Positions 1,372 through 54,387 of a DNA stretch of 64,000 nucleotides are shown in pieces (positions within the stretch are counted from its first letter, which is position 1; every line of letters begins with the position of its first letter). The translations under genes were made by a program, and so were the position numbers. The notes under the pieces are model-generated. The model saw only the letters and a list, made by a program, of their open reading frames with translations, was not told the DNA's origin and searched no databases. This DNA is from Podarcis melisellensis. Lineage: Eukaryota. The stretch is from the NCBI GenBank assembly GCA_964234715.1, contig OZ174284.1, one strand, 5' to 3'.

Positions 1372-1639
1372 NNNNNNNNNNNNNNNNNNNNNNNNNNNNN
1401 NNNNNNNNNNNNNNNNNNNNNNNNNNNNNNNNNNNNNNNNNNNNNNNNNNNNNNNNNNNNNNNNNNNNNNNNNNNNNNNNNNNNNNNNNNNNNNNNNNNN
1501 NNNNNNNNNNNNNNNNNNNNNNNNNNNNNNNNNNNNNNNNNNNNNNNNNNNNNNNNNNNNNNNNNNNNNNNNNNNNNNNNNNNNNNNNNNNNNNNNNNNN
1601 NNNNNNNNNNNNNNNNNNNNNNNNNNNNNNNNNNNNNNN
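1372..1639. other. N-block, 268 bp
   Basis: Run of N; content not visible. Confidence 0.95.
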
Positions 1640-2252
1640 GTTCATTAGACTCCTGAAGTCGTTGAAAAGAAGTTACAGAATCTCTCGCCCCTTATTCTTT
1701 TTGGTTTCCAAAACTTTATCTACAAAATGGTAGCATTTAGCAAATGATAATAAACAGAATCATGCCAAAATCAATACTGTCCTGCTACTGGAGCAGTTGA
1801 TTTTAATGGAAGCTGCATGTCCTACATCTTAATCAATAACTATGCACAATAAAAACACACACATTTTTTTGGTTATTTTGCTTACGCAACAGCTTTTGGA
1901 TTGTCTGATTGTGTCTGTCTATCTGCTAGTCTCTCCCTTATTATATCTCAGCAATTTTATTATATCCAGCATCTCGTGCACACAGTCCTCAGCTTGCCAT
2001 TGTTAAGATTCTAGTTTTATAATGCAGTGATGACAATTAATCCCATTTACATTAATATTTCCATTTTAAATTTTAAATAGATTTTCAATAACACACACAA
2101 CCCTTCTTTCTCCACCCATACACGATGGTGATTTTGAAGGGACTCACAAAATTAGCCCAAATAATATTAATTTCAACAAAGGAAGAGCTGTCCTGATAAA
2201 AGACAACTCTCTAAGAAAGCAAAAATAAATATGAGAAGGAAGCTCCTTTCAT

Positions 2253-2640
2253 NNNNNNNNNNNNNNNNNNNNNNNNNNNNNNNNNNNNNNNNNNNNNNNN
2301 NNNNNNNNNNNNNNNNNNNNNNNNNNNNNNNNNNNNNNNNNNNNNNNNNNNNNNNNNNNNNNNNNNNNNNNNNNNNNNNNNNNNNNNNNNNNNNNNNNNN
2401 NNNNNNNNNNNNNNNNNNNNNNNNNNNNNNNNNNNNNNNNNNNNNNNNNNNNNNNNNNNNNNNNNNNNNNNNNNNNNNNNNNNNNNNNNNNNNNNNNNNN
2501 NNNNNNNNNNNNNNNNNNNNNNNNNNNNNNNNNNNNNNNNNNNNNNNNNNNNNNNNNNNNNNNNNNNNNNNNNNNNNNNNNNNNNNNNNNNNNNNNNNNN
2601 NNNNNNNNNNNNNNNNNNNNNNNNNNNNNNNNNNNNNNNN
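2253..2640. other. N-block, 388 bp
   Basis: Run of N; content not visible. Confidence 0.95.
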
Positions 2641-51157: not shown

Positions 51158-51371
51158 NNNNNNNNNNNNNNNNNNNNNNNNNNNNNNNNNNNNNNNNNNN
51201 NNNNNNNNNNNNNNNNNNNNNNNNNNNNNNNNNNNNNNNNNNNNNNNNNNNNNNNNNNNNNNNNNNNNNNNNNNNNNNNNNNNNNNNNNNNNNNNNNNNN
51301 NNNNNNNNNNNNNNNNNNNNNNNNNNNNNNNNNNNNNNNNNNNNNNNNNNNNNNNNNNNNNNNNNNNNNNN
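51158..51371. other. N-block, 214 bp
   Basis: Run of N; content not visible. Confidence 0.95.
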
Positions 51372-54239
51372 TGAGAAAGCACGCAGACACAGCAAACCAA
51401 AGTAAACAAACTGCACGCACTATCGCCAGCTCCTAAGAACACAGATTTGTCCGCCTGTAAAAGGCATCAGTACGTGGCTGAAGCATACCCACAACAATCC
51501 TCTTGCTGTTTTCTTGGGGTTTTCAAGTAATTGCAGACCAGTATTAGCCCTACGAAACCACCCTAGCTTGCTTTAAATTCAAGTGCAACAGATTTTAAAA
51601 GAGGATCACAAAGCTTGCTGAGGAAAGGCAGGCCTCTCATTTATTCCTGAGCCTGAAGAGATATTAAGCAAAAAAATATTTTAGATTGCAGAGTGGTATC
51701 TATAGGTTTACAGTAGTACTGTGGAGGCTTGGAAGCACCATCAAGGGATGGGACAGCGGGCTTTTAGGAGAAGAATATGGCCAAGGTTGTCTCCCAGGCT
51801 ATGTACACATTGGCAGCAAGTCACATTTGCATCGTGCAAAGCACAGAGGAAGAGGTATCTATACCCCAATGCACATTACCTGTTTGCTTTCCCCACCCGT
51901 GGAAAGCTCCCCCATAACACCTATTCATGAAGCTGTCATCTGTGCATGTGCACCTATCTGCTGGTGTCTCTAATGTACACCCCTTGGCAAAACTGCAAAA
52001 TGAATATGGCTTACGTCTTCTAATTGGATGGAAGGGGAAAATGCACCAAACAGCAGCATTTCTCAAGAAGCTACAGCATCAATATGGATGTGGCTAATAG
52101 TGTGTGTATGTGGCTTCCAAACCTAGCAATGGAGCACACTTGATGCAGAGTAAACTGTAATGTGCACACAACCTCTGACAGCTTCTCATTCCATCCCTTT
52201 GATCTGGTACAGTAGTTTACAGCAATCCCTGGTTTGCAAAACAAGGAACCAGTCTCAGCAATGTGCATGTAAGAAATGAAAGCAGAACAACCATGGCACA
52301 AGCCCCTCAGGAAGCTGCCTTATACTAAAAAAGATCATTGGTCCACCTGGCTCAGAACTTCTCTCATCTGGTGCCCTTCAGATGTTCTAGACATTCCTGA
52401 CCACTGGTCATGTTGGTTGTGGCTGATGAAATTTGTAGTTCAGAACATTTGGGGGACACCAGGGTGTGGAATGATGCTCTACCACTGACAGAAAGTGGAT
52501 CTCCATGTTATTGGAGGGGTTTCCTACCTGGAACCCCAAGGATTGAACCTGGGATATTTTACATGCAAAAGGAGACCCTTCTCCTGTCTTAAACTTGTGT
52601 GTCCAATCGCTAAATGTGAATTAAAATGTTAAATTTGTATGAAAGGGTATCTTAGAAATGCTGACAACTGGAATACTGTGAGAAATACAGATTGCGGTTG
52701 TAGACTCTTGGGCTGGGCTTTAAGTGTTTCTGTTGCGTGGGTTGTTGCTATTATTGATATTTTTGTATCTTTATTTTGGATCTTATGATTTATTTGGGAG
52801 CTGTTCCAATTTGGTTGTGTTTTTTCTGGAGTTTTATTTATTGTTTATGGCTGCTTTTGTTATGTTGTAATGTATTTTTTCATGCTGTAAGCCAATTTGA
52901 GCATGGTTTCAACTATAGAAAGGAGACATACAAATAAAACTATGCAAGTATGTATGGTAAACAAATAGAGACGAGTACCTTAAATTCTCCTTTTGTCAAT
53001 TCACTTACTCATATTAAATCCATGATAAATGAGTGAGCTATGAATGATGTATGGAATTTGTCACTGCTTAGCATATGATGGAATTAGTGCATCTTTCAAA
53101 ACTGAGGATAATTTGATTTGGTAAGATTTGTGTATCATTTAAGAATTATATACTTACACGGGGGGAGGGGGGCTCAACACAATTTACAGTATCTATAATA
53201 TAAGAAAACATGAGAAAAGCATTAAAACTGTATATGATATCAGTAAACTCACACTGAAGCCTGGATTGAGTAGCTATCATTAAAGCTGCCCATAAGCCTG
53301 GAAGAATAAAAATGATTTTCCTGGTGCAGAAATGATAGTTAACTTGGCGCCAGACATGCCTTCCTGGGGAAAGCGCTCCAAAGTCCAGGGTTGCACTATT
53401 ACAGTACTGTACTGAGAAGGTCCAGTCTCCCATTCTGTAAACTTATATGAAGATCTGTCTGCCCTTTAACGCAATTAGCAAAAACTTGCAAAATGGGTTG
53501 ATGAAACAAATTGCAACTTTTCACTGAAAACGAGCAGTTTAGAAATGAGTAGCAGTTTAGAGGTTTGTGAGGTGGTCATGTCCAAATTCCAAAAACATCT
53601 GTGTGGAATTAAGTAGCATTTTTACTTAACAAAGTAATCTAATTCAGTAAAAGTATGGAACATGTGACAGCTTAAAACAATAAAGCCACTGAGGATTTGG
53701 ATTAAAGTAATAATACCATTCTGGACAACAGGTGTCCAGAACAGGCAATATTACACAAAATATTGATCATGTGGCTTTGGGAACACATTGCTGCACACTA
53801 TTTACGGGTAAATATTGCTGTGACTCCTAAACTTGTAAGCAACATACAAATAAACTTATATACTCTTGATAATTGTAAAACCTTAAACAGATAATAATAA
53901 TATATTTAACCAGGTTTGCAAAACTTAGGAGCCAGTGTGATTCTCTGGATTTTACAGCTAAGTCTTACTGAGATTCTGTGTATACATACAAGTTCCTGTT
54001 ACGTGCATATTCAGGAGCTACATTTTTACATGTTTTAATTACACCTCTTTTTTAGTGTTAAGCAGGACTGAAATTGCTTAATATATACAAATTACTGAAT
54101 TATTTTATAAATATGTTGTTTTCCTCCTTTTCGATTTTTTTTCTAAAAGAAAACAGATGTCATTCATATTGTTTCGTTAAAAACAGGAATGTTTAACCTA
54201 TCAGCCTGTTGCATTTGAGATGTTAAAATGAAAAATGAC

Positions 54240-54387
54240 NNNNNNNNNNNNNNNNNNNNNNNNNNNNNNNNNNNNNNNNNNNNNNNNNNNNNNNNNNNNN
54301 NNNNNNNNNNNNNNNNNNNNNNNNNNNNNNNNNNNNNNNNNNNNNNNNNNNNNNNNNNNNNNNNNNNNNNNNNNNNNNNNNNNNNNN
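54240..54387. other. N-block, 148 bp
   Basis: Run of N; content not visible. Confidence 0.95.

Follow-up and report, generated by a model that had tools for sequence, protein, structure and literature searches.

Eight N-runs in a lizard FOXP2 locus probably mask the cores of ancient conserved non-coding elements

What is hidden when runs of N interrupt the introns of a developmental gene, and are such runs gaps in the assembly or masks laid over sequence that was read? The question is raised by a 64-kb stretch of contig OZ174284.1 of the lizard Podarcis melisellensis (the window: the whole stretch of DNA analysed, made up of unmasked DNA and N-runs, to which all coordinates refer). The window holds eight N-runs totalling 1902 N, here called blocks 1-8. 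A first-pass annotation of the same DNA had taken them for masked non-coding elements in FOXP2 introns. The evidence assembled below makes it likely that the N-runs mask the cores of ancient conserved non-coding elements (CNEs), in their lizard copies, within FOXP2 introns 2 and 3.

The general setting of the blocks is as that annotation had described it. All eight runs have the lengths and positions it listed. They fall into three groups (1.4-5.0, 28.1-28.8, and 50.4-54.4 kb), and their five smallest spacings are equally tight in only about 1.5% of random placements. The flanks are AT-rich as claimed, with a GC content of 0.353 within 200 nt on either side of the blocks vs 0.401 at random places in the window (P=0.001). 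No repeat within the window was found within 950 nt of any block, a weak test, as self-repeats make up only 2.8% of the window. The remark that repeats had been left intact also holds for the perfect microsatellites, of which (AT)22, (GGT)12.7, (TC)25(CA)16, (TAC)11, and (TTTA)13 are unbroken, the last of these only 111 nt from block 5, and for a reverse-transcriptase open reading frame (ORF) of 386 aa that is unbroken at 45359-46519 on the plus strand (RVT_1, E=3.7e-37).

The gene around the blocks

A scan with short motifs, used as a lead only, gave an exact match on the minus strand. It points to one exon:

49980-50069, minus strand: FOXP2 exon 3, 90 nt, 30 codons, unmasked; acceptor cttgcag at 50070-50076, donor gttagt at 49974-49979.

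The 30-residue peptide of this exon has 17 relatives among 1.84 billion representative proteins, most of them matching at residues 57-86, and is 93-97% identical to these residues in the best representatives; 29 of its 30 residues are the same as in mammalian FOXP2. All of the named relatives are Forkhead box P2, from carp, sturgeon, primates, and rodents, and the others include a partial model without a name from the agamid lizard Phrynocephalus forsythii. The full-length carp relative carries the FOXP-CC (coiled-coil) and Forkhead domains, and P0017 and P0009 carry PF16159 and PF00250. A word search with the carp protein returned 3289 relatives; the best 120 of these 3289 are all named or typed as FOXP2, all carry PF16159 and PF00250, and come from fish only. 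A literature search with the exon 3 peptide returned no paper, and a scan of the window for glutamine-rich ORFs, as FOXP-like exons, found nothing.

Two further observations concern the strand and the order of the locus. On the plus strand, A exceeds T in every 8-kb bin and C exceeds G in most of them, which fits minus-strand transcription of a long intron. In addition, the alignments around exon 3 are collinear with the FOXP2 loci of an agamid (11 alignments) and a sturgeon (8 alignments), in the same order and orientation. Judging from its sequence, then, the window is a part of FOXP2 on the minus strand, with exon 3 between some 14 kb of intron 2 and some 50 kb of intron 3. The placement in introns 2-3 that had been proposed at first pass is borne out by the unmasked exon and by its relatives. 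Blocks 6-8 lie in intron 2, 0.34-4.3 kb upstream of exon 3, and blocks 5-1 lie in intron 3, 21-48.6 kb downstream of it.

The two loci used for comparison differ in extent. The agamid FOXP2 locus (L001) is 99 kb long and without N-runs, with exon 2 at 10001-10171, exon 3 near 87.5 kb, and an intron 2 of 77 kb; it ends about 12 kb downstream of exon 3 and covers blocks 6-8 only. The compact sturgeon locus (L002) has exon 2 at 10001-10168, exon 3 at 35701-35793, exon 4 at 46414-46551, and exon 5 near 47.5 kb. Only the unmasked DNA of the window was aligned; coordinates and identities were compared, and the letters facing the N-runs were left out. Positions 54185-54221 (37 nt, 19 nt left of block 8) were blanked in all local BLAST databases. 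Proteins labelled as primate or human were excluded from the comparisons, save for a 25-residue insertion from isoform P0022, which was used in a coordinates-only tblastn search.

Conservation at the block edges

The blocks and the conserved flanks (anchors) that were found beside them are as follows; FOXP2 is read from the minus strand throughout.

1372-1639: block 1, 268 N, FOXP2 intron 3, 48.3-48.6 kb downstream of exon 3; a weak collinear sturgeon anchor at either edge (E 0.014 and 0.048), tentative.
2253-2640: block 2, 388 N, putative masked core of a conserved intron-3 element; sturgeon anchors 2159-2252 (79.8%) and 2644-2729 (71.6%) abut both sides.
4682-4957: block 3, 276 N, putative masked core of a conserved intron-3 element; sturgeon anchors 4645-4677 (84.8%) and 4967-5093 (80.5%).
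28076-28279: block 4, 204 N, putative masked core of an intron-3 element, 21.7-21.9 kb downstream of exon 3; sturgeon anchor 27959-28075.
28594-28793: block 5, 200 N, mask in intron 3, without a cross-species anchor.
50406-50609: block 6, 204 N, putative masked core of an intron-2 element, 337-540 nt upstream of exon 3; agamid flanks 50206-50397 (90.2%) and 50610-50793 (89.2%).
51158-51371: block 7, 214 N, putative masked core of an intron-2 element, 1.1-1.3 kb upstream of exon 3; agamid flanks 50975-51149 (73.9%) and 51372-51488 (84.0%), sturgeon flank 51373-51464 (73.9%).
54240-54387: block 8, 148 N, putative masked core of an intron-2 element, 4.2-4.3 kb upstream of exon 3; agamid flanks 54126-54184 (86.4%) and 54388-54586 (94.0%), sturgeon flank 54388-54520 (86.6%).

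In the 26 kb that can be compared with the agamid, the 11 collinear islands make up 13.6% of the bases. Blocks 6, 7, and 8 each lie inside such an island, and the alignments end at most 8 nt from the block edges (at 50397, 50610, 51149, 51372, and 54388). Two conserved stretches at these blocks are:

49685-51488: squamate-conserved island with exon 3 (minus strand), block 6, the stretch between the blocks, and block 7; agamid alignments 49685-50397, 50610-51149, and 51372-51488, broken only by the N-runs.
54388-54788: conserved right flank of block 8; 87.3% identical to the agamid over 403 nt, the first 134 nt 86.6% identical to the sturgeon.

The same pattern is seen at a greater distance. 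When the whole window is compared with the sturgeon, five of the eight collinear alignments abut blocks 2 (on both sides), 4, 7, and 8; the remaining three are an alignment starting 10 nt from block 3, exon 3 itself, and an unmasked island at 3137-3327. The anchor beside block 4 (87.3% over 118 nt) stops exactly at the block edge, and its sturgeon counterpart lies 1.7 kb downstream of sturgeon exon 3. A more sensitive sturgeon search adds the other side of block 3 and the weak anchors of block 1, so that collinear anchors are found at seven of the eight blocks, one of them tentative.

Conservation rises toward the blocks in both species. Identity to the agamid is 93.6% at 0-50 nt from the edge, 89.8% at 50-100 nt, 81.4% at 100-200 nt, and 75.4% at 200-400 nt, and the aligned fraction is 0.87-1.0 near the edges vs 0.09 beyond 400 nt. 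In the sturgeon comparison, this fraction falls outward from 0.31 through 0.30, 0.06, and 0.03 to 0.00, the last beyond 400 nt, and identity in the first 50 nt is 88.3%. Alignments abut all six of the edges that can be tested in the agamid (P=6.8e-6) and five of 16 in the sturgeon (P=2.9e-6). On the shoulders of the blocks, conservation across distant species thus stands far above that of the surroundings (in the sturgeon, at blocks 2, 3, 4, 7, and 8), and the three clusters lie in introns 2-3 of a developmental transcription-factor gene, FOXP2. The first-pass annotation would have been contradicted by sequence no more conserved than the neighbouring intron; the shoulders show the reverse, with identity and aligned fraction peaking at the blocks. 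Its proposal of amniote-conserved elements stands in part, as islands common to the agamid and, at blocks 2, 3, 4, 7, and 8, the sturgeon; the species compared are two lizard lineages and a ray-finned fish rather than amniotes at large, and conservation in mammals would follow from the masking only.

Unmasked DNA of the window is also conserved in places:

3137-3327: unmasked conserved island between blocks 2 and 3; collinear with sturgeon intron 3, 82.7% over 191 nt.
62403-62919: unmasked conserved island in intron 2; collinear with agamid intron 2, 79.8% over 521 nt.

Further unmasked islands are seen at 43436-43819 and 40113-40394; together with 62403-62919, they are 73-80% identical to the agamid. 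Such islands indicate that the window has more conserved elements than the eight that are masked. Within intron 2, ORF P0004 of a public assembly spans, at 50070-50404 on the minus strand, the 340 intron nt between block 6 and exon 3, with 51% amino-acid identity over 154 residues, and this intronic stretch is thus conserved in at least one further species. The stretch 51372-54239 was found by word search in eight coded organisms, with word shares from 1.0 down to 0.35. About 5% of its sampled words occur in X19 and X20, two small data sets that are guessed to be RNA and come from a related coded organism. The part at about 52.3-52.95 kb looks like an interspersed repeat with an A-rich tail, which may explain the X19 and X20 matches.

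Alternatives to masked non-coding elements

Several points weigh against the explanation by masked CNE cores. Block 5 has no anchor in the sturgeon, where the sole adjacent match is a spurious one to the (TTTA)n microsatellite, and it lies outside the agamid locus. Block 1 has weak sturgeon anchors only, at the E values given above, and for blocks 1-5 as a group the sturgeon is the sole species of comparison. The conservation of the cores would be read from their shoulders, not from the core letters. Finally, the 40 nt of sense strand directly upstream of blocks 5, 6, and 7 are pyrimidine-rich (0.62-0.70 vs a background of 0.51). These tracts could be acceptor tracts, although the sense strand is T-rich overall.

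The last point belongs to the alternative that survives best, namely that at least one block hides an alternative or unannotated exon (of the 2a, 2b, 3a, or 3b type, a poison exon, or the exon of an overlapping non-coding RNA) together with splice-regulatory surroundings. Non-canonical FOXP2 exons 2a, 2b, 3a, and 3b have been described in mammals. Besides the pyrimidine-rich tracts, an exon-like piece with a consensus donor, predicted to be coding in the agamid, lies 1.8 kb downstream of exon 3 and speaks for such exons in this region. Furthermore, at least one human FOXP2 ultraconserved non-coding element (UCNE) overlaps an exon-intron border (PMC11217675). A literature search on FOXP2 alternative exons returned nothing relevant.

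The search for coding sequence, by contrast, argues against hidden exons. When the carp, sturgeon, and agamid FOXP2 proteins were compared by tblastn with the unmasked window, only exon 3 and the exon-like piece at 48051-48164 were found, with no exon 2 and no exon 4 onwards. The tails of short FOXP2 fragments do not match the block flanks, and the coding frames at the block edges are open no longer than background; no coding sequence extends out of any block. The 25-residue alternative exon of P0022 has no match in the agamid locus, in the unmasked window, or in the sturgeon locus, even where it faces the blocks. In addition, exon 3 itself is unmasked in spite of being identical to the mammalian protein at 29 of 30 residues, so FOXP2 coding sequence does not by itself set off the masking.

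The sturgeon locus also places the blocks relative to the canonical exons. In that locus, the counterparts of the intron-3 anchors are found at 37.5-43.9 kb, in the interval from exon 3 to exon 4, and those of the intron-2 anchors at 31.1-34.2 kb, in the interval from exon 2 to exon 3; no exon is modelled in the sturgeon from 35.8 to 46.4 kb. From this collinearity, lizard exon 4 would lie past the left end of the window and exon 2 far past the right end (intron 2 of the agamid being 77 kb long). The idea that blocks 1-5 are exons 4-7 was rejected, since all of the sturgeon anchors lie upstream of exon 4. No overlap with coding exons was found for the canonical exons that could be compared (sturgeon exons 2-5 and agamid exons 2-3), and to that extent the earlier description of the elements as non-coding is confirmed. 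Taken together, the evidence on the two sides leaves a hidden exon an unlikely explanation for any of the blocks.

Two candidates in the unmasked DNA touch the exon question. The exon-like piece lies at 48051-48164 on the minus strand, within an island at 47915-48201, and has the donor gat/gtgagtaaag. Its DNA is 87% identical to the agamid, where it was predicted to be the last coding exon of partial FOXP2 model P0001 (residues 89-126, 84% identical). The acceptors would differ between the two lizards, the window copy runs into a stop when read in phase after exon 3, and no match to the piece was found in the sturgeon. The piece may be an alternative or poison exon of squamates, or else a conserved element taken up by the gene predictor. 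The second candidate is a 30-nt micro-exon at 51071-51100 on the minus strand, within the conserved DNA that separates block 6 from block 7. The agamid retains the acceptor AG, and a 3-nt insertion there leaves the frame intact, but it does not retain the GT donor (cag/gtaatc vs cta/ataata), which argues against a conserved micro-exon at this place.

A second alternative supposes that the masks have a cause other than deep conservation, for instance word matches by chance, low complexity, or screening for contaminants, and that the masked DNA is conserved no better than the shoulders beside it. The monotonic climb of identity to the block edges in two species argues otherwise, since cores would then be expected to be at least as conserved as their shoulders. 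Moreover, the flanks are not of low complexity, and there are collinear anchors at all but one of the blocks, the tentative one included. Masking for such reasons is, on this evidence, very improbable.

There remains the question of whether sequence is hidden at all. The block lengths are 4 mod 8 in six of eight cases (P=8.5e-5), even in all eight, and 0 mod 4 in seven; the start positions share no common residue class. Lengths in steps of eight are expected from a word-based similarity mask, not from estimated gap sizes, and because the lengths are quantised in this way, the N-runs are taken as an algorithmic mask. The spacing of the flanks leads to the same result. Across block 6, it is 213 nt in the window vs 218 nt in the agamid; across block 7, 223 vs 221 nt; and across block 8, 204 nt in both. 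For the sturgeon, it is 392 vs 382 nt across block 2 and 290 vs 292 nt across block 3. In all five blocks with two good anchors, the flanks are thus within 0-10 nt of the spacing in the other species. An assembly gap has an estimated length and flanks whose continuity is not guaranteed, and the blocks have neither property. The eight N-runs are length-preserving masks over real sequence, not unread DNA, and the sequence beneath them would appear to have hardly gained or lost a base over several hundred million years. That they are instead true assembly gaps with lengths estimated by the assembler is exceedingly improbable in view of the quantised lengths, the agreement in spacing with the contiguous loci of two other species, the alignments that reach the block edges, and the implausibility of eight gaps in unique DNA where perfect microsatellites and a long interspersed nuclear element (LINE) are read through.

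The first-pass annotation had been right, then, in calling the runs masks rather than gaps. It had also linked their lengths to a 200-bp threshold of conserved-element catalogues, and this argument does not stand: a catalogue threshold as the origin of the lengths is ruled out by the 4-mod-8 rule and by the 148-nt block.

Other features of the window bear on its repeats and RNA genes. The 386-aa ORF is followed by one of 111 aa (span 45359-46870, plus strand), and the pair is a young LINE within intron 3, antisense to FOXP2; a look-up of the LINE ORF protein returned no record. A tRNA scan of the window found none. Rfam gave no match over the window at its gathering thresholds, and in permissive mode, in a search that ended at 54180 beside block 8, it gave sub-threshold matches to palindromes and microsatellites only, none of them at block edges. 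Palindromic hairpins, seen on both strands, lie at 35523-35625, 36805-36931, and 39129-39255, two of them being copies of one family. They match mir-5408, mir-4536, and other microRNA families far under the thresholds and are probably repeats of the type of miniature inverted-repeat transposable elements.

Known FOXP2 elements and possible functions

Ultraconserved elements (UCEs) in the strict sense are 100% identical over at least 200 bp among human, mouse, and rat, and the elements in UCNEbase are at least 95% identical over at least 200 bp between human and chicken. The lizard blocks are likened to the human FOXP2 catalogue by locus and shoulders. [quoted passage not shown] The lizard blocks resemble the human FOXP2 UCE and UCNE clusters (dedUCE clusters 30-32 and the UCNEbase set, e.g., FOXP2_Griselda) in that they lie in the same gene, are intronic, AT-rich, collinear, and clustered within a few kb, and are conserved beyond the level of the intron. 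Conserved elements in FOXP2 introns are already a known kind of feature, and the blocks are the lizard copy of a known landscape.

As to what such elements do, an enhancer in intron 2 of zebrafish foxP2 is cited as driving reporter expression and being bound by lef1 (Bonkowsky et al. 2008, as cited in PMC5826363). Its likeness to the lizard blocks lies in the position in intron 2, and the flanks of blocks 7 and 8 are conserved in a ray-finned fish, the sturgeon. Human "enhancer 330" is conserved in vertebrates and VISTA-positive in mouse forebrain (PMC5826363). It too is a deeply conserved element of the FOXP2 locus, with the kind of function that the lizard blocks may have. However, it differs from them in lying 330 kb from transcription start site 1 (TSS1), near the downstream promoters, and it is not known to lie in introns 2-3.

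The favoured model is as follows. Each anchored block would form the core of a peak in conservation, with almost nothing of the intron aligned beyond 400 nt, and the anchored blocks would be non-coding with respect to the canonical exons. In the developing brain, most of the elements may serve FOXP2 as cis-regulatory modules (enhancers). Blocks 6 and 7 lie with exon 3 in one 1.8-kb island, conserved among squamates and in part also in the sturgeon, and may regulate the splicing of this exon in addition or instead. We infer the enhancer or splicing role from the elements of the FOXP2 locus in other species. A bolder and quite unlikely proposal goes further: the island with blocks 6 and 7 and exon 3, or the exon-like piece at 48051-48164, or both, would be parts of an ancient splicing switch that tunes FOXP2 dosage, for instance a poison or alternative exon together with its regulators, and, separately, the unmasked islands at 3137-3327 and 62403-62919 would be ancient FOXP2 regulatory elements that have diverged or been lost in mammals.

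For the genome of this lizard, N-runs of this type should not be taken for gaps or for "unknown" biology. They can be classified by a recipe that leads from a visible exon to the locus of another species and from there to a comparison by coordinates only. For the biology of FOXP2, the addition is a single one: the cluster of elements in introns 2-3 that is famous in mammals would be present and collinear in a lizard, with shoulders that can be traced to the sturgeon.

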